Of a stretch of DNA of 64,000 nt, positions 8,856 through 26,301 are shown piece after piece. This stretch comes from Setoptus koraiensis. Lineage: Eukaryota > Animalia > Arthropoda. The translations under genes and the position numbers were made by a program. The DNA lies in NCBI GenBank assembly GCA_048013815.1, contig CM106586.1, forward strand, positions 7,130,001-7,194,000. Direction: 5' to 3'. The notes beneath the pieces were generated by a model that made no database searches, was not told the DNA's origin, and saw nothing but the letters and a program-made list of their open reading frames with translations. Numbering within the stretch: the stretch's first letter is position 1; every line of letters starts with the position of its first letter.

Positions 8856-9174
8856 TATAAATTTGTCTTGCTTTTCTAATGGTTTTAGTGAAATGACGAT
8901 AGAATTTTGCCTCTATTCGATTTGTTGTTGTGCTGTGTGCGCTTGCAATTTCTCATATAAATGCATGTATACAAATGCGTGTGTTTATGCAAATGACGCC
9001 GATGGTCGAGCTAGCCAATCATTGTGGAGTGAGGGATAAAATAATTCTAATTCATTGACAATGTTGATATTTGAGGATATAAATGCAACATTTTGCTAAT
9101 ACTATGGACAGATGTCAAGTTAATAATTGTAATTGTGGATAAACGCAACGCAAATGGAAATAGGAGAACAATAA

Positions 9175-9206
<32 letters not shown>

Positions 9207-9883
9207 CAAAATATTGAGCATAGAGGGAGTGTGTGGCTATGATCGTGAACGATGATGATCGCTGTACTGCTGTATGCACTGTGTATAACAGTGTGTGCGT
9301 GTGTGTGTGCAGAAACGAACCAATAATAATCTGCTTTCACTGGTGCGCCGCAGTCGTCCATTTGCTCCAATTGGTTCGCTCCATCGCTTTTGTACTCTAT
9401 TAAAGGGTGTTTCAATCAAAGCGCAAATCTAGAAAACACACTGTGCTGCTCGCTCGCACATATTCTTTCCGAAATGGTGATCAAATGAAATTCAGCACAA
9501 CAAATCAGATAGACTGTGTTGGGGTCAAGAGAAGTCCCATTTGCTTGGCACAATTATTAATTTCGCGCTGCACATATTCTCTCTCTGCACGCTGTAACTT
9601 CCAGAGTGCATCGACAAATATCGAAAAATGAAGCACTGTGGAAGGCAGCCGTAGCCTTGACAGTACTCCATCACCTCTTTGATTGAAACACACACACACA
9701 CAACCTATGGCACAGGGAGCGAACCTATAGAGCTCCATCACAACGAACGAACGAACGAACGCACAGCGCCGCTGTATACAGCCAATTGTGCACCATCACA
9801 ACCAGCGCACACACACTTACACAGGACACAGTGGACGAGTCACTACAATAACAAATGATACTAATGATAAACAGTCCGGCCGT

Positions 9884-15305: not shown

Positions 15306-17462
15306 CTAATTGTTTATCTTGATTTCAACGAATTCATTCGGAGTGTTGCTACAATCGGACAAGTTGGAGGCCCCGATTAGGACAATTTGTTGAGATTTCT
15401 TCTTGGAGCACGGCATGGGATCCGACGCGTGGTGAATGTATCCGAGATTCTCATAAAAATGGTTACCATCTTCATCCTTGCTGGCATTATCGATGTCAAT
15501 ATGTTCTTTAGTTCTATTGCTTGTACTGTCAACGTAAAATTGTCTGTATCTCATCTGTAGTTGCTTGTGAGGATTGGCCGGCATGAAAAAAGTCGACACA
15601 AAGTCTATGAATGCACAAAATCCAATCAAATAAATCATGCCTTCCCATCCGATGAAAGTTGTGAGGTATTGCGATAACAATGCACTAGAAACAGTCGCTA
15701 TCACCGTGGACATGTAAACAAATCCAATATTTATACTGGCGTACTTATCACCAAATGAATCCTGAGCTGCAGATGGCATTAGAGCGTATTGACTTCCCAC
15801 GGCCTATTTATTTGGTTTATCAATTTTCGCATCCAGTTGAATAGATCGATCGAATGACAGTTGGTAAATATGAATAGGTGATTAATCAGGCTGCTTCAAA
15901 AGATCACACCACAGAGAATGATTAAAGCTTACCCCAACTGCCAGCACCACCCAAATGCCATAGACAATCTTGTTGAAATATTTTGTCATTGGCATGGACA
16001 TCACAAAGAACATTGTCATGCCGCTTAGCGGTATGCTCACTGCCTAGTAAAATAAATCATTGAATAAATATAATATACAAATCGCTATTATTATTCTATT
16101 AATCTAGTGCTTGTTGACACTCTACTGGTGACCACTTACTCTATAACCTAACTTGTCCTTCACGTGACCCATTGCAAGTCGACCTACGGTGTTGCTTATG
16201 GCGCAAGCGGCCCCAACAGCCGACAGGAAATAATCGTCTGGTATGAATGTCTGACCGAAGGGCTAGATTATGCAAATGCAACAATATAATGATTATTTTG
16301 GAACTAGAAAGTTTAGTCAATCGCAAACGATTGGATTATATGATTGAAGGAGATCTCACCTTGTATACAAATAATAAATAGATAAATATCAACTCAGATA
16401 TGAGCACCTTGAGAGACAGAAGCCAAAATTCAAGTGTTTTGAATGCGAACTTCGGTTCGATACTGTAATCTTGAAATTGAGTTTCTTTGTATTCTGCCGG
16501 TTCACAATTCTTAGCAGGAACAGCATCCACGTCTTTAGAAAAGTTGTCATGCGAGCTAGTTGTTGGTTTGTCTTTCTCACAGTCTTCTGACGAAGAGTTC
16601 CTCCTGGAGTCCGCTGGAAACATCAGGGCAACACCAATGCAGAATAGAGACAGTGTAATTGTCCCTTGGACTAGCGTTGATTGCTTGGTTCGGTCAAGAA
16701 CGTAATCGTCGTCGAAAAGTCTGAGTATTTTAGATGATATAATTGCATCTATTTAGCTTCTAAACTCTATCAGATTCGTCGGCCACTATGGTCGATAATG
16801 GATATAGATTATGGTGGAAGATTATGAATCGAGAAAGTTGACTCACCCCAGCTGGTTGGGTTCCACATTGTACGGATTAATTATTGCCGTTATTAATGGT
16901 GTAAAAATGGTTGGAGCCGCAGCCATCGACGCGGCCCCAATACCCGTCACTAGGCCTTTGTGTTTTGGATGCCATTCGCAAACATTCACCATGGGCGAAG
17001 TATAGCAACAGGCCAAACTGACTAGAAACGATCCACCGTAGACAATTACCACCAACAGAAACGTTGTATCTAATGCAAAATATGTTGCGAATATGCCGAG
17101 ACTGACAATGTGAAGAATTCAGAGCTGTCATTAAACGCTTAGCTATATGTTACAACTTCGGATTATTTGTCGAGGGTGCTGACTTACCTTTGCAACAGTC
17201 CACCAACTAGGCAAACTACTCGGACACCGACTTTACCTTTCATCCAACCACCTATGGGTAGGAGCAAAGCTGAAAATCCCGCTGCACTTAGAAACCAAAT
17301 TGAATCGTCTAAACTCATATCACTCTTTGATCTGTAAATTAGATAGGATGTGAGATAGACACCTGTGTTTCCTGCAGCAAAATACAGCCCCATGGCAAAG
17401 TAAACACATGATGTCCCTATAACGGTGAGATATGATTTCACTCTATCACTGATGATTAGCAT
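15306..17462 (-). CDS. MFS transporter, oxalate:formate antiporter (OFA)-like, ~540 aa
   Basis: Six exons joined in frame: 17462-17188, 17101-16847, 16720-16360, 16262-16140, 16043-15933, 15803-15306 (1623 nt). About 12 hydrophobic segments. Family-like motifs YTSPMVNVCEWHPKHKGLVTG, YKPFGQTFIPDDYFL, NTVGRLAMGHVKDKLGYR and QDSFGDKYASINIGFVY. An additional upstream exon cannot be excluded. Confidence 0.85.
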
Positions 17463-19170
17463 GATGATGTCCCCGTGTGAAGACCTCAGTGTGTCCAAGA
17501 TGTTTTTGGGATGATTGGTGTGATAAAATTCAATTGATCAATTGATAGTGATACTTCACCTAACTTCTGATCAAAACACTGGATTCGACACGGGATAAGG
17601 TGCAAAGGTCTACGTGATTATTGATTTGTGCTAAACTATTAGACTATTTTATGGGTTTATTGACTGATAATTGTTAGTTACATTCCTATATGACTTCTAA
17701 GTTGGTCAGTATGATGCGTTGTTGGTTTCGACAATAAAAATATCACAAGTGTCTCACAAATTTATGTCTTCGCATTACCATACTTTAGTTACAACTAATG
17801 ATCTTGTTTTTTTCATGTCTACAATTAATTTGATTTGTTGATGCAAATGTTTCTTCAGCGCACAACTGCGAATGATGCCCCTAAACCGTAATGATCCATC
17901 AATAATTTTCCATGTCAAATTGTTTTATTGTTTTAGCTGCACTCCACGTTTTGCTTGGTAAGTATGTTCACTTTCAATAAGGAGAACCTGTTGTTTTTCT
18001 TCGTCTGACAATAAATAATGCATATTCTATTGCTAGCTGTTGTGGATAAGAATCTTCGTTCACGATCAGGATCAAATCAAGACGCTTGTCAAACGGCTGC
18101 ATTAACTCTGGAAACTACAAACAAAACTGATTTTAACTAATTTGTTTCGCTGATACTTTGTTTGTTTGTTTCGATCTCAGAAACAATTTCCGACTAGAAT
18201 ACTAAGTGAGCCAAGTCGAATGATTCGTTGCATTAACTAGAGAGTGATGCTGAGTGATTCAATTCTTATCTTGAACAATATGTTATAACTAGGCAATATC
18301 CCAGTCTTGGTAGCGTTGAATGATACTCACACAGGTCCATTTGGTTTCGATGATGCTGTTGCCTGACACATGGCAGTTTTCAAATCTTTCATCTCAATAA
18401 ATGATGATTCCCTACCAATTAGAGAAAATTATGTCAATTAGGTTAACATTAAACGGAACTAAGTTGAACTAATTAGATCGTTGGAAGTGAGATGATTTTG
18501 TTTGTGCAAATTTGTGATCATCAGATAGTAGATAACAAGATAACACAAGAGACTTAGACCAACAGACAAAACTGGTTAAACATTCCGATTTTAATTCAAT
18601 TAAAGCCAAGCCGAGTCAAGCAATTACTAGTTGTTACTGAACATGCTTTCATGGTGTTACTACTCACACTTGTTATCTATCTGTATGTCAAACAATCTTT
18701 GCTATAATTTTCTTATTACACTTACCTGTGTCAATCAAATATCTTTAATAGGATCAATAATCTGGATGAGAGAATTTTTCACCTGTCGAAGCTAATCAAT
18801 GAGATCTTTCTATATTAAGACAAATTAATGGTGTGCGTTAAAAATTGAACTCTAATGTGACATACATCACAAGAATGAATAACTTTCGTTTGTTTGCTTG
18901 TTTTTGCTATACATCAAGCAACACCGGAAGTGTGGAATAAATATTATTATTGGAGCTTTAGGAGCCATACTGTCTGCGAGCAACACAACTATTTACCACC
19001 TCGTTCGCTTAGTTCGAGATTGCAAAAGAGATTATTCCAATGATTGGCCTGTTGATAGTCTATTTGCTGATTGCCATCCGTCATACATGTCAATGCTGTA
19101 TTTAAAACAACCAACTGTACCTATTGATAATGAGACAATATTAACAATGACTTGTGTGATATCCAAGCCC

Positions 19171-19274
19171 ACAGTTGGTTAAAGGGGACCAAATAAATCT
19201 GACAACGTAGCGATCCAGAGAAAGTGATTCATCTGAGCCCTACGTCAAAATTTAGTCCGATTCTAACCAACTGC
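19171..19274 (-). ncRNA. mir-133: microRNA mir-133 precursor (long hairpin, variant mature sequence)
   Basis: - strand 19192-19171 reads UUGGUCCCCUUUAACCAACUGU, 20/22 identical to canonical miR-133 (UUGGUCCCCUUCAACCAGCUGU) with an intact seed. The upstream 5' arm GCAGUUGGUUAGAAUCGGACUAAAU (19274-19250) pairs with it over ~22 positions. Confidence 0.85.
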
Positions 19275-22200
19275 GTATTAGACATCTCTCTTGCACGGTG
19301 CAATATTGACAGTCAATTATCTGTCTCGGATGGCATCGAGTTGAATGGGCTACAATGAAAGGGGTTTCTAACGGTGACCATGTATCACTGCAAAAAACTT
19401 GTTGCTTACTTGTTGTTTGCTAAAACGTTCTCTATGGGCGACTAATTTGATTTATATGCTATAAATGCAGTATATAGACAATATATTGTGGACTACTTAT
19501 ATGTTTATATTCTATCTACAGATTATTCACTTGGGGCAATACGTTTCCACTGCTCTATATTGACTGAATAAATGGACGACAAGATGACTGGATGATGCAA
19601 TGACTGAATGAAGTTGAGACAAGAAAAAAGTAAATAGAAATATTCTCTCTCAACAATGACTATCAACTGTAGGCAGTCAATAGATGATATATTATTAATA
19701 CATCTGAATAGTAGAGTTGCTCCCTCTTTCTCTCTATTTCTCTGAGTAAAGAGAGGGGGGTATACATAATTACAGAGCTTATTATGATAATAATAATAAC
19801 AATAATAGTGATAGAGGCGAGCTAAAGAGTTTTCTATTAGTTTTTATTAAGATAAAACAATCGGTTTTATCAGTTTGATTTTTCTCTCATTGGATAAAAC
19901 AGTGCAAACATACACACAAAAACACATCCACGAAAACAAACAGGGTTAGTAGCGGTAGTAATCACGATGGAAAATGTTCCGACTCTACAACTTCATCCTA
20001 GTGAGCTGATTTCCATCACAGTTGTATAGGTGTAGTAGAGCTACTACACTAATAAACTCAAGAGCCTCCGAGATGAAAGAGGAGTCATCAAAGGGGAAAG
20101 AATTAAAGATCACAAACATGGAATAAGAAAAAGATGATCTTGATTTTATAATTCGCATCTTGCTTAACTATCTATAACGTAGCTAGAACAGCTTGAACTA
20201 AGACTCTCATCTCAAGGATACTGCACACTTTACATATGCACATACTCTTTCCCTTGTTAGTGTGCTTATTCTTGAGGTACCTAGGTGTACAAAAACATAC
20301 AACCTCCTCTATGCCATAGTTTCCCCATGATTACTGTACTCTCTGCCTATCTATTATAATCATTTATTATTGTAACGCCGCCAAATTCTTCTGAATATCG
20401 CGCCTCTCTACACACATGTACACAGTTTAGTCCCCTTAATGTCTTGGCGCAATAGCGGAATGACATTAGCCCAATGACACAAGCTTTATATGTATTTTTG
20501 TTTAACTGTCAGCCCAAATCCTCTTCTCAGCTATATCTTTGGATTGCTCCTCCTCTGACAATTCTTGAATCACGATAATTCATTAATTCATGAAAACCTA
20601 GAATTTTCGCGCGTCTACAAAAGTTTCGCCATGCAGCAGTTAACAGGTTTACTAGGTATCTCGATACCTTCAATTAAGTATGATGAGCTTGTTGTTTAGG
20701 TTTTTAACCATTCTAATTGTATTGTACATATTCATACAAAACAATGAAAGAGTTGACATTTGGCTAAGGGTGATGAGTTGGGTGAACAACAAACAAAAAC
20801 ACAACAATTCTCTACGCCATATGAGAGATAACGACCAATATATGATGAAATGCTTTTTGTATGATGCAATACGAAGGAACAGTTCCTACAGTTTGTATTG
20901 GTAGGAAAAGTTAACTACTTTCAATATTAAAACAATATACAGCAGCATCAGACAATAATAATGAGAGCTCGGGGCATAAATGCATAAAGATGTCTGATCA
21001 GATGGTGAAATTCTTGCAGTTTGAATTTAAGAAGACGCCGTTCGTAAACTACCATACTACTTGACATTGTGTGTATGTGTGTGGCTTGGCGCTCTCTATT
21101 TGGAGATTTGCAAAATAATTATATAATAGCTTTCTCCATCGCTTCAAAACACCATTTTATGCATATGCACATTCGCATATGCTTACAAGAAGTCTGTTGT
21201 GTTGTGTTTTGCGTAGCATGGATACATGCTACAGATACATATTTCGAAGTGAGACTGGGAATATGCAGTGAATTGGCATAAGGCAAACAGACATGTTTGC
21301 GTATGTCAAGCTCTTCAAGACGATTCATACTTGGCTCATGTCAAGATAAAGCCCAAAGAGAACGAGAGAGATAATTAGTCCATGTCCTCTATAGTGCCAA
21401 GATGTTGATTGTGATGACGATGAAAAAGCCCATGTGGCGCCTAGCTCTTCCGCCTTAAAACTAAATGTAAATATATGTATGCATAATAGTAGGCGTAGCT
21501 AGACCGTATCTACTGTGTCTCTCAGAATTGGCTTAAATTTTATGATGCAGAAGAATAATGGTGATGGAAGCCAAGAATGTCTGTCATGTGGTGTTCGACT
21601 GGATGTGCACATAACGAATTTAATGTTGTTTGCTTGCTGTTGTATAGCGATAAGAGAAAGAGAGTTGTTTTGCATAGAGATAGTTCCATTTTAGGTGTAT
21701 TAAACTTTAGCGCAACTCCATTTGCTGGAGGGAGCCCTCACCTCCAGCGAACAAGCTTGCGGGCTTGCGGGCGAGCGAGCACAGCTGAACAAAAAGTTCC
21801 CAACAATTACAAATTTGGTTGTTGTTTGCAACCATCCTACTGGGCGCTGGTTGTGTTGATTTAGCTGGTTAGTAGATATAGAAAAACAAAAGATACCAAG
21901 TATTAGCGGCAGGGGCGGCGGCGACATGCGATTCTCGCTACATGTAGCTATCGGGCACACTTATGTAACTCTCGCAACACTCCTCGCGCTCTTGGATCTA
22001 GTCAACTCTTCCTGCTATAAAACCTGTCTCCCCCAGTATATTTGTCTTGTCCTCGTTTGATAGGCCTCAATTAAGGCATGCAGCTTTGTTTAATCTCTTG
22101 ACTGGGTGCACCATGTGAACCAGTTAGCGGTATGACAATGTCTATCACTCAGCTTGTCAGCTGTGCCATGTTGGCGTGGCCGGCGTCGTCAGTGTCGCCG

Positions 22201-23101
22201 ATGGTGTTGGCAGTGGCTAGGGCACATATGAGACAAGTGCTGCAGTTGTATGTTGTGAGTCAAATCTCATCGGAAGATGAATGGTCACCACACTTTGTGT
22301 GGAATAGACAAGAGAATGCATCAATAGACAGTATATTGTCCCCTAGTCGCTTTGTGTCGCTGCTCCCGAAGCACTACACTCACTGTGTGTAGGCGTTTGT
22401 GGCGTGTTGGTGCGATACCAGTTTGTATCTTTGAACTGTCTACCAGCATTGCCTATTGGCGGCCAGTCGAGAGATAAAGTAAGTTGGTCATGGATGGCAG
22501 TGGTGGCGATCTGTCTTGCAATCGTCCGTCGTCCCTTGATTCGTGTGTGCGATATGCAGCAACAGGCCCAGCCTCAGCGCATGCCGTCGCTCCGAAAATT
22601 GTTGTATATATCACTGGATATTATTGGACTGGATTGACATGATAAAATAGATTTATAAATGGTTCAAGCTAGCAGCGATTTTACGACTTGCATGCACAAG
22701 TTGATCATTTGAATATATACACATGATACGTGGTTGTTGTGTTACTTTCGCCATTGCCGCAGCGGGTAATTGGCCCGAGCGTCAGCCCCAGCCCGAAGCC
22801 CCAATTGCCGGTAACCAAAGACCCGCGCCCGAGCATTTGCCCGTTTTTACAATCGATTTGATTCGCTGCCTGTGGGCCTGAACGCTGTTACATGTGCACA
22901 CGCACTAGTCACTATAGCGCTGCTATTAGCAGTCTATCTGTTGGCACCGTGGCAAGCAGACGATAGAACATGTTGCGCGCAGATGGAGAGTGTAAGCGCG
23001 CGCTGCTGCTGCACTGACTGCGACGCTAGTGCAGTTACTGCTAGCAGCCAGTGACACTAGTTCGTTTGTGCCCATTCGGTCGCGTTGTGCGTCGGAGGTG
23101 C

Positions 23102-23399
23102 GCGCGGATATCCAACTGGATATCCGAACCGCCACCGACCCGCTCGGCACGCCCCAGTCCGAAGCGTATCCAGATCGCCAGAATGAATGGTTATCGGGTA
23201 TCCAAGAGTCTTTTTTTCCTGTGAGCCTCGAGCGTATACACCGAGTAGCGATCGCTCCGCAACACCAACACCGAGGCTGTTTTATCGCGAACCGCGCTCC
23301 CAATCCGCTCCGGATGTGGGCCGGATCGGACATGGAGCGCATTGGGCAGGGAGCGGGTCGGGCAGGGAGCGGATATCGGACGGGTATGGATATCCACGC
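23102..23399. mobile_element. ~300-bp foldback / MITE-like element with imperfect terminal inverted repeats
   Basis: Left GCGCGGATATCCA (23102-23114) vs right TGGATATCCACGC (23387-23399) is a 12/13 inverted match. Further inverted blocks GATATCCG and CCGACCCGCTC/GAGCGGGTCGG. TGC flanks both ends. No coding capacity evident. Confidence 0.45.
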
Positions 23400-25715
23400 T
23401 GCTGCGCATCGGCATGCGGCACAAATGCTGGCATAGGTGGCCGTTGTTGTGCGAGCGCGTGAGTAGTGGGCCTTTGAGCACACTCGCTGCATTTGTTAGC
23501 TCATTTGCACTGGCTGCGCGGCTTGTTAGTTCGACTGACTCAATCGGCGATCACGCGATCGAGTCGATTGATCCGGTCGATTGAGTCGATCGAATTACTT
23601 TTGTTCTCCGTTTGCCGGGCCGGGCCGAGCTCGCACTCGTCGCAGGGCGTCATCACTGTTCGAGTGTGTTTGTTTATGAACCCGCGCCACCGTCGTGTGT
23701 CAGCGTCATTCTAAGTGTGGCGTCAATAAATTCGACAACTGATACGGCAACAAGTAGTGCCGCTATTGCGCGCAACTCGTGCAAATGACGACTCCATGTG
23801 CACTCACCATTTTTATCCGATCACATTTGTCCGATTTCATCCAATTTTATAAAATTTTATCCAATTTCATCAGTGACCGAGCGACTGCCGCATTTATTCA
23901 AGATTCACCAATTTGGACACAACAAACCGGCCCCAACGTTGTCATGGTTGACGCGAATCGTGTTGCGACACACACACACACACACATTCGTCACAGCGAG
24001 CGCTGTTATGTGGCATAATGGACAGTGCAAGCGGAACAATAGAAACATAGAAATTATTCTTAATTTGGACAACAACAATCTAAACGCTAGCGCCTTGTGA
24101 GACGAATCTTCACTCACTCGAGTGTGATCGCAACTATCATGGCCAATCTAGCTAACCAAACGACGGCTTTGTGTGTCGAGTGTGTCAAGTGAGCAAGCGT
24201 GAGGACAAACTTTAATCGTGTGCATTGTTCCTCCGGCAAACAAATGATTCTCGCATCAAGAAACAACGTTCCTCTAAACAGGCATTCTTTATGCAAACAA
24301 GATCAGGGTAATTATCATCTCATTTTTGGCAACTGTAATATCAATACAAATGATAATTCCTGCTCACTCTCTCTCACTCTCTCTCTCTCTCCCTCTCCAT
24401 CTCTGACTCCCTCTTGCAGCCAGATATCGCAGATCGCACAATGGTGTGTGCCAGACGGGACAGATAGGCAGATAAAACAAAACGACGACGAAATGATTAT
24501 AAAACGCAGCAATATATAAATTAGGCAACATGCAACAGATGACGAACACACAGCCTGACATCCCTTGTGGGTGCCACATAACAGGGCCAGCGCTGTAGTC
24601 GTCTATTCCTTCCACCATGATCACTGGATCGGTAAACTCCAACGTAAGCCGAGTAGGGATATATAATCTTGAGGAATGGGAATGAGCAAAGCATGGGGAA
24701 GCGGCTCGGGGGGGGGGAGGCGCGAGACATCGGGTAAGCAACAACAAGAGAGCGATATAAATAGCAGCGACAGGCAAATATAGGATGATGTAGCAAGTGA
24801 AGTGATGCGGTACTCTCACAAAAGAACAACATCAACATCTCGTCTCATCGCTTACTCTCTTAAGTTCGAAAGTCATAGAGTCCTTCCTTTTGAGCCATCT
24901 CTGAGCTAAATTAGCACCACTAATATCAATATTTAACGCTAGTACCATCGCCACACCATACTAGACAAATGTTGAACACCACATACAAAACTAACAACTA
25001 TTATTGTAGTGAGCTATCGCCGTATGTGATATGATCCCACTCACTTTCTTCGTCCCATCATCCCACAACTTTCATTCTGTCGTCTCACAATCATCATCTT
25101 CGCCGTGATCATCTTTGTTTTTGGCTGCCCTCTCTCTCTTTCTCTTACTTACACACTCATCACAACCATATCATCAAGCGTACATGGTATTTACAGTCAT
25201 GTTGCTGGAGATAATCTGCAAAGACAACGAGGCTACTGTTGTACGCATCAAGCATCAACTACGAATCGTCGAATGATCGTCAGTTCAGTTTCATACTCTA
25301 CATTGGCATCAACGCGTAACGTTACATCACATACTACATGAATGAGGAGACTTATCTAACACCCAGAAACAGTCGCACATATTTTATCCATCACAGTCTT
25401 AGTTAGTCTATAGAAACGCCCTAAAACTCAACTTCTTCGACATAGTAAGATAGCAGCGGGCACCCATAGCGGCGTTGCTTAGTTTTCGACCGAGTGAGAC
25501 CAAACAACAAAAGTGTCATTATAACTTTAGTCGCCGATACGAGCAGACATATATTCATCTAATCATTAGTTCTGACTCAGGAAATTGATCATTTTAATAT
25601 TGGATCAACAATAACATTCGTCGAAAAAAAAAGTGATTTAATTGGACGACATCTAAACAATCAACAGTAATCACCATTCATTCTGCACATTACATGAGAT
25701 AATTTCCACATTTGA

Positions 25716-25785
25716 TTCCATGAATCTTTGCAATTCCATATGCTTTTAAGTGATGATATTATGGAATGTAAAGAAGTATGGAGTG
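25716..25785 (+). ncRNA. mir-1: microRNA mir-1 precursor, copy 1
   Basis: Mature TGGAATGTAAAGAAGTATGGAG at 25762-25783 is identical to protostome miR-1-3p. The 5' arm CCATGAATCTTTGCAATTCCATA pairs with it. Confidence 0.95.
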
Positions 25786-25828
25786 AGAGAGGAAAAACGA
25801 CTACGCGCTTCTATCATATCCATATCTG

Positions 25829-25895
25829 ATTCCATAATTCTTTGCACTTCCATATGGGACAAATTCTATCTATGGAATGTAAAGAAGTATGGAGT
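25829..25895 (+). ncRNA. mir-1: microRNA mir-1 precursor, copy 2
   Basis: Mature TGGAATGTAAAGAAGTATGGAG at 25873-25894; 5' arm CCATAATTCTTTGCACTTCCATA. Confidence 0.95.
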
Positions 25896-25967
25896 AAGGT
25901 AGGATTTACCGTCGACTGATCAATCTGCATCAACAATTATAATTATCATAATAAATATCTTAATTCA

Positions 25968-26030
25968 GGCCATATTTCTATGCAGTTCCATATACAATTG
26001 ATATTTATGGAATGTAAAGAAGTATGGAGT
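25968..26030 (+). ncRNA. mir-1: microRNA mir-1 precursor, copy 3
   Basis: Mature TGGAATGTAAAGAAGTATGGAG at 26008-26029; 5' arm CCATATTTCTATGCAGTTCCATA. Confidence 0.95.
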
Positions 26031-26301
26031 GAATAAGGATTGCAACTCCGAGTTATTAAGTAAGCAAATATCCATAAAATTATTATAGGTAATACGTGCC
26101 AGAAAAGTTCCAGTTACCGTGCTACTTTGTAGAAATCGTGTCTTCTATTATCAAAAAATATTTATTTCCTGTTTGGATTAAATAATTTCAAATAAAATTT
26201 TACTCTGGGTGATAACAAGTTCAAAATCATCAAGTTTGTTATTGCTACATAATATATTTAATCGCGACTTATGGCGAAAAGGCTAATTCATCATATAAAA
26301 T

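Follow-up and report, generated by a model that had tools for sequence, protein, structure and literature searches.

The microRNA mir-133 is a muscle microRNA of bilaterian animals that is linked to mir-1 and is among the most conserved of the microRNAs. Long precursors are also known from plants, in which the fold-backs of the miR319/miR159 type are processed by sequential DCL1 cuts.

Within the invertebrates, conserved microRNAs have been lengthened repeatedly, a long hairpin being defined as one in which the Dicer-excised region is at least 42 nt (Javad-zada et al. 2025; PMC12553114). The lengthened examples include fly mir-989, Daphnia mir-375, let-7, and mir-278, lepidopteran mir-12, and Tetranychus urticae mir-375 (PMC12553114). 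Fly mir-989 is dependent on Drosha, Pasha, and Dcr-1 and is diced by recombinant Dcr-1/Loqs-PB; it needs a bulge close to its dicing site as well as an extension that is base-paired, and the bulge probably acts as an internal platform for Pasha/DGCR8 (PMC12553114). Very long hairpins show modest processing in cells, and species-specific enzyme preferences or extra factors were not excluded by the authors (PMC12553114). Drosophila Dicer-1 is reported to select its substrates by loop size (PMC8482068). Among the eriophyoid mites, Dicer-1, Loqs, Drosha, and Pasha have been reported in Aculops lycopersici, for which the genome paper found no clear Exportin-5 and suggested a deviating microRNA pathway (PMC7738191).

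Here we describe a mir-133 hairpin on the minus strand of a 64,000-nt stretch of the genome of an eriophyoid mite, Setoptus koraiensis; this whole stretch is referred to as the window. We consider it likely that the locus is the sole functional mir-133 orthologue of this mite, that it has grown between its arms, and that it is processed by canonical cropping and a single dicing step. Lengthened precursors of conserved invertebrate microRNAs are already published (PMC12553114), and mir-133 in an eriophyoid is an added case; neither mir-133 nor the eriophyoid mites appear in the main text of that paper. In the searchable literature, neither of the two variant mature sequences described below was found, bar one unrelated human primer.

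Sequence, fold, and family assignment of the mir-133 locus

The mature strand reads TTGGTCCCCTTTAACCAACTGT, which is miR-133 with U in place of C at position 12 and A in place of G at position 18 (c and G, respectively, in the Rfam consensus), the same two changes that an initial annotation of this DNA had read on the minus strand. The remaining bases, 20 of the 22, match both the search pattern and the Rfam consensus, and the seed at positions 2-8, UGGUCCC, is unchanged from canonical miR-133. The locus folds into a 126-nt hairpin of -51.2 kcal/mol (z = -6.8), a stability equalled by none of 200 shuffled sequences. In the minimum free energy fold U12 is paired with A19264 and A18 with U19270, in agreement with the Watson-Crick pairing that had been claimed for both of the changed bases.

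The ends of the arms were set by the 2-nt 3' overhang rule, and the cleavage sites are accordingly predicted ones. The predicted pre-miRNA is 102 nt long, around 40 bases over the usual hairpin length, and has 57 nt between its arms. The unusual length first noted for this precursor is thus upheld, although the original estimate of about 104 nt had counted in two basal bases. Above a lower stem of about 13 nt, the hairpin consists of a 22-bp duplex and 2 bp more, which are followed on the 3' strand by a UUU bulge of 3 nt. The inter-arm segment, when folded alone, forms the GACGUAG/CUACGUU stem described earlier, with z = -2.4. The coordinates of these elements, and of neighbouring features discussed later, are collected in Table 1.

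Table 1. Features of the mir-133 locus and its surroundings, in window positions; L007 is the orthologous locus of a close relative
Feature	Length	Position	Strand	Remarks
miR-133-3p, predicted guide	22 nt	19171..19192	-	U12, A18, seed UGGUCCC kept; identical in L007
miR-133-5p, predicted passenger	23 nt	19250..19272	-	U3 opposite A18; extra A9 opposite U12; 23/23 in L007
Predicted pre-miRNA	102 nt	19272-19171	-	
Inter-arm (Dicer-excised, predicted) region	57 nt	19193..19249	-	imperfect stem extension; 43/57 in L007, no indels
UUU bulge, 3' strand	3 nt	19195..19197	-	2 bp above predicted dicing site; may stand in for the apical junction and dock Pasha
Basal stem, 5' side		19273..19284	-	below predicted Drosha cut; 13/13 identical to L007 over 19273-19285
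Basal stem, 3' side		19160..19170	-	12/13 identical to L007 over 19158-19170
RF00446 match		19166-19279	-	full length, model positions 1-74
mir-1 tandem triplet	76-82 nt (normal)	25709-25790, 25823-25901, 25961-26036	+	44.4, 59.5, and 41.2 bits
GC-rich island		22000-24000		
MFS-type transporter gene		15306-17498	-	multi-exon

When the window was scanned at Rfam gathering scores, mir-1 alone was reported. An E-value scan with the mir-133 model, RF00446, gave a full-length match on the minus strand of 32.7 bits (E = 1.9e-5), in which the 5p arm aligns to the 5' half of the model and in which the loop holds an insertion of 51 nt. It is because of this insertion that the score falls under the gathering score of 55.5 bits. 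The initial annotation had expected standard predictors to miss the hairpin, and this is what happens both here and in a longer relative (L017, see below), whose mir-133 goes undetected by Rfam even at E <= 5. With the RF00446 family the mite hairpin has in common a mature strand in the 3p arm, an identical seed, a single copy, and the presence of mir-1 at a distance of 6.4 kb. It differs from the family in the C12U and G18A changes, in an extra A in the 5p arm, in the 57 nt between the arms (about 15-20 in the model), in its position on the strand opposite to mir-1, and in its score below the gathering cut-off.

Across the whole 48.8-Mb, two-contig genome, the RF00446 search found this locus as its only match. 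A pattern search of the genome with up to 3 mismatches returned this site, with 2 mismatches, and one 3-mismatch site (L003), which was rejected as a second mir-133, having z = -0.55, no hairpin, and no RF00446 signal. A canonical short mir-133 elsewhere, which the initial annotation had envisaged as a possible competitor, is thus not among the matches: neither a second nor a canonical short copy was found in the 48.8-Mb genome by RF00446 or by the pattern at up to 3 mismatches. A reversed control pattern gave no match in the whole genome with up to 2 mismatches, and simple arithmetic over 2 x 48.8 Mb predicts about 0.01 chance matches at that tolerance, against the 1 observed. A chance origin of the miR-133 match is excluded.

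The same figures bear on the suggestion that the functional product comes from an antisense hairpin on the plus strand, or that the structure has arisen by chance and is unrelated to microRNA biogenesis. RF00446 does match the plus strand weakly (20.5 bits, E = 0.06), as it would for any near-symmetrical hairpin, but the minus strand scores 12 bits better, the sense strand also outscores the antisense strand in a metagenomic relative (L016), and the exact seed with its 20/22 match, for which about 0.01 occurrences are expected by chance, is found on the minus strand only. This explanation is extremely improbable.

Conservation of the arms and lengthening across the lineage

Relatives of the mite were sought through the genes beside mir-133. 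A neighbouring 202-aa ORF shares 55% identity with a hypothetical protein from the eriophyoid mite Fragariocoptes setiger and 94% identity with a protein on a Logan contig of run SRR33593474, the run that represents the close relative L007. The other matches of this ORF were an F. setiger contig (L008) that stops 590 bp past the gene and a contig, L009, that is too short. Exon 1 of the neighbouring MFS gene, used as a single-exon query with the exons not joined, matched short contigs only, none of which carries mir-133, and a neighbouring 673-aa ORF gave no matches.

In L007 the orthologous hairpin is found at 9136-9249 (-), with a pre-miRNA of 102 nt and z = -6.7. Between this one close relative, on which the comparison of rates rests, and the window, the arms are identical at 45 of 45 positions and the lower stem at 25 of 26, whereas the flanks are only 69-72% identical and contain many indels. 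The inter-arm segment, at 75% identity, resembles the flanks (Fisher p = 0.53), from which the arms differ strongly (p = 9e-7). The single difference in the lower stem, on its 3' side, adds pairs in L007, and the UUU bulge, at hairpin positions 89-91, is unpaired in both. The contrast between arms and flanks shows strong purifying selection on the arms and on the lowermost stem, with an extension that drifts in sequence. Within the consensus structure that the two extensions share, there are three two-sided pair changes (GC->AU, CG->UA, and AU->UG) and two one-sided changes. When 14 random substitutions with the same mix of transitions and transversions were simulated, an equal consensus structure was kept in 8-11% of trials (p = 0.08-0.11), so that the case for a selected shape in the extension is no more than suggestive.

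More distant relatives came from exact-pattern scans of metagenomes, which covered the T12 form of the mature sequence and a form with C12 and A18. No T12 form was found in the JGI metagenomes, in the GTDB genome contigs, or in IMG/VR. The C12/A18 form is absent from GTDB contigs and occurs on three metagenome contigs, L016, L017, and L018 (the contigs concerned being Ga0058701_10000196, Ga0268247_10002314, and Ga0209372_1000017), of which L016 and L018 are one and the same sequence. L016 combines A18 with the canonical C12 in a pre-miRNA of 109 nt, with 64 nt between the arms and z = -7.1, and scores 51.5 bits against RF00446. L017, which also has A18 with C12, has a pre-miRNA of 207 nt with a branched inter-arm segment of 162 nt and z = -3.7. 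No ORFs are common to L016-L018 and the window. A 1356-aa RhoGEF-WD40 ORF on L017 is 65% identical over 1293 aa to the genome of this mite, and L017 also carries at least two tandem mir-1 hairpins, 2.5 kb off on the other strand and facing away from mir-133. On these two grounds L017 appears to derive from a related mite in which the locus is arranged in the same way. A (CAA)n microsatellite is present at 3263-3297 of L017, inside the 162-nt inter-arm segment, and repeat slippage may be a partial source of its lengthening.

Taken with the window and L007, these contigs give four sequences, representing three or four species, in which the taxonomy of the metagenomic contigs is inferred. The loop comparison with other mites that the initial annotation had proposed can thus be made with organisms that are, by their sequences, probably related mites, and gives 57 nt (L007), 64 nt (L016), and 162 nt (L017). 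The pre-miRNA is 102, 102, 109, and 207 nt long in the window, L007, L016, and L017, respectively. The arms are nearly invariant throughout, the 5p arm of L016 differing from that of the window by 1 base, while the extensions of the window, L016, and L017 have no alignable sequence in common. All four extensions are paired in their folds, with modest loop-only z scores of -2.4, -0.7, -1.65, and -2.1. The place of the window's UUU bulge is taken in L016 by a 3x5 internal loop and in L017 by 7-9 unpaired nt of the 3' side, such that an unpaired stretch of the 3' strand lies just above the predicted dicing site in 4/4 hairpins. Since L016 and L017 combine A18 and a long inter-arm segment with C12, the lengthening, the extra A of the 5p arm, and the U3:A18 pair are lineage-wide, and C12U is recent and restricted to the species of the window and to L007. 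The length of the extension, on the same comparison, is highly labile.

The four hairpins also clarify how the two changes in the mature strand came about, which the initial annotation had described as compensated substitutions. At position 18 this description holds: A18:U3 represents a true two-sided change against the family consensus, and G18A and the C-to-U change of its partner are old, being common to all four taxa. At position 12 the pairing holds but the co-substitution does not, as A9 is already present, and bulged, in relatives with C12. In L016 the partner of C12 is G10; in the window U12 is paired by A9, and G10 forms a wobble pair with U11. Exchanging C and U at position 12 in silico, in either hairpin, makes a difference of 0.3 kcal/mol, which is what C12U costs. 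Because the helix can shift its register by means of the additional A of the 5p arm, U12 is structurally neutral, with no 5p co-substitution. Neither position 12 nor position 18 belongs to the seed or to the supplementary pairing region at 13-16. The hairpin is not weakened either, which accounts for the tolerance of both changes, and the canonical set of miR-133 targets should be kept.

It could be argued that mir-133 is a decaying or poorly processed locus, in which growth of the loop has crippled biogenesis and which is being lost from a streamlined genome. The modest processing of very long hairpins in cells (PMC12553114) would accord with such a fate, as would a mature sequence that has started to change and the failure to detect let-7 and mir-7 in the genome, a hint of microRNA loss in the lineage. 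Yet 45/45 arm positions and 25/26 of the lower stem are conserved amid neutral divergence of about 30%, the hairpin is retained in four sequences despite full turnover of the loop, and both mature changes keep their pairing with the seed intact. We regard decay as quite unlikely. The locus is better described as a real, if divergent, mir-133 that selection has maintained and whose precursor is of unusual length. The proposal of a functional, divergent mir-133 with which this work began finds backing in the selection on the arms, the full-length RF00446 match, and the intact seed.

Two further sources of the additional length were considered and rejected. Among the microRNAs that could be located, long loops are not a general trait of the genome: mir-9 (79 nt), mir-124 (76 nt), and each copy of mir-1 fall in the normal range, at 76-82 nt. 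Nor is the inter-arm insert a transposon or other repeat, as a 60-nt query has a single genomic match. The lengthening is specific to mir-133 and involves no recognisable transposon insertion.

Processing of the lengthened precursor

The mite hairpin shares a number of features with the lengthened hairpins of other invertebrates (PMC12553114). Its 57-nt region exceeds the 42-nt threshold, and an unpaired bulge lies by the predicted dicing site. One microRNA is lengthened and others are of normal size, and the length differs widely among relatives, at 57, 64, and 162 nt. A base-paired extension, as drawn in the folds, may be a further likeness, the loop-only z running from -0.7 to -2.4 over the four sequences. 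In contrast to the published cases, which range from >100 nt to >1 kb, the mite extension is modest. The likeness to the long fold-backs of plants is more distant and consists of a long stem beyond the microRNA duplex; in the mite there is no evidence of phased or sequential cuts, the extension is unconserved, and the enzymes are those of animals, Drosha and Dicer-1.

From the match between this hairpin and the mir-989-type description we infer ordinary cropping followed by a single dicing. The sequence, fold, uniqueness, conservation, and lineage spread of the hairpin were computed, and the cleavage sites, the choice of strand, and the role of the bulge in the following scheme are deduced from them. 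The precursor was lengthened in the mite lineage through growth between the arms, to 57 nt here and to 64 and 162 nt in relatives. Drosha/Pasha would crop the pri-miRNA at the bottom of a roughly 35-bp stem, composed of around 13 nt of lower stem and the 22-bp duplex. The 3-nt bulge just above the duplex would replace the terminal loop, acting both as apical junction and as docking site for Pasha. Dicer-1 would then cut the 102-nt pre-miRNA once, measuring about 22 nt from its ends, and the 57-nt apical hairpin would be freed as a by-product. The 3p strand would be loaded as the guide because it starts with U, its 5' end is weakly paired, and its seed is intact. As fly Dcr-1 is selective for loop size (PMC8482068), the paired extension could lower the efficiency of processing.

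A functional mir-133 might instead be processed non-canonically, either through a second dicing of the 57-nt fragment or through a lineage-specific factor or an altered Dicer or Microprocessor. The excised region is indeed stem-like and of the size of a pre-miRNA, and the loop-size selectivity of fly Dcr-1 (PMC8482068), the species-specific enzymes or extra factors left open for long hairpins (PMC12553114), and the deviating pathway put forward for A. lycopersici (PMC7738191) could all be brought in on this side. The would-be second duplex, however, is no better conserved in L007 than the flanks are, at 75% identity, the extensions of L016 and L017 are unrelated to it in sequence and shape, and the fragment left by the first cut would have a 3' tail of 5 nt rather than 2 nt. 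Furthermore, fly mir-989, the sole long hairpin tested so far, follows the canonical route, and the genome of this mite contains a 1222-aa ORF of the Exportin-5 family (contig C2:12198252-12200873 (-); PF19273 over positions 3-816, 137.9 bits). A deviating pathway of the Aculops type need not be invoked. Non-canonical processing is thus unlikely. The initial annotation had raised a need for atypical or two-step Dicer processing; this finds no support, since the geometry fits the canonical route of mir-989 and the second duplex that two-step dicing would use is not conserved.

Besides the scheme of canonical cropping and single dicing, it is conceivable, if doubtful, that the apical region is a selected regulatory module and no passive by-product. 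It might serve as a docking site that gates Microprocessor or Dicer and thereby decouples the output of mir-133 from that of the divergent mir-1 triplet, or it might give rise to another small RNA that evolves quickly. If this were true, the repeated growth of the region, up to 162 nt, would mark an active process in an otherwise streamlining genome.

Genomic neighbourhood and implications for mite microRNAs

The mir-1 triplet lies 6.4 kb from mir-133 on the opposite strand, and this proximity fits the ancient linkage of mir-1 and mir-133. Midway between the two divergent loci is a GC-rich island, of 48-60% GC in surroundings of about 35-38%, which contains overlapping ORFs on both strands without a Pfam match and may be a shared bidirectional promoter region of mir-133 and mir-1. 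On the other side of mir-133, 1.7 kb downstream and on the same strand, begins the multi-exon gene for an MFS-type transporter, a layout that is also seen in L007; mir-133 could share a primary transcript or promoter with this gene.

The sole mir-124 candidate, at C2:22842384-22842459 (+), scores 31.8 bits against a gathering score of 49 at normal length and may be another diverged conserved microRNA. In the whole genome let-7 was not detected with RF00027 or with a mature pattern at up to 2 mismatches, nor was mir-7 detected with RF00053. Given the behaviour of mir-133, both may still be present in a longer or diverged form.

With this locus, mir-133 and the eriophyoid mites join the list of lineage-restricted hairpin lengthenings. 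The graded series of 57, 64, and 162 nt, in which every member has a bulge at the dicing site, provides independent comparative support for the rule derived from mir-989 mutants. The C12U change illustrates how a substitution in a mature strand can be structurally free where the passenger arm has a spare base. Finally, the locus exposes a failure of homology tools, in that Rfam overlooks the 102-nt form at its gathering cut-off and the 207-nt form at any threshold, and the microRNA "losses" of streamlined mite genomes therefore need rechecking by searches that use the arms only.
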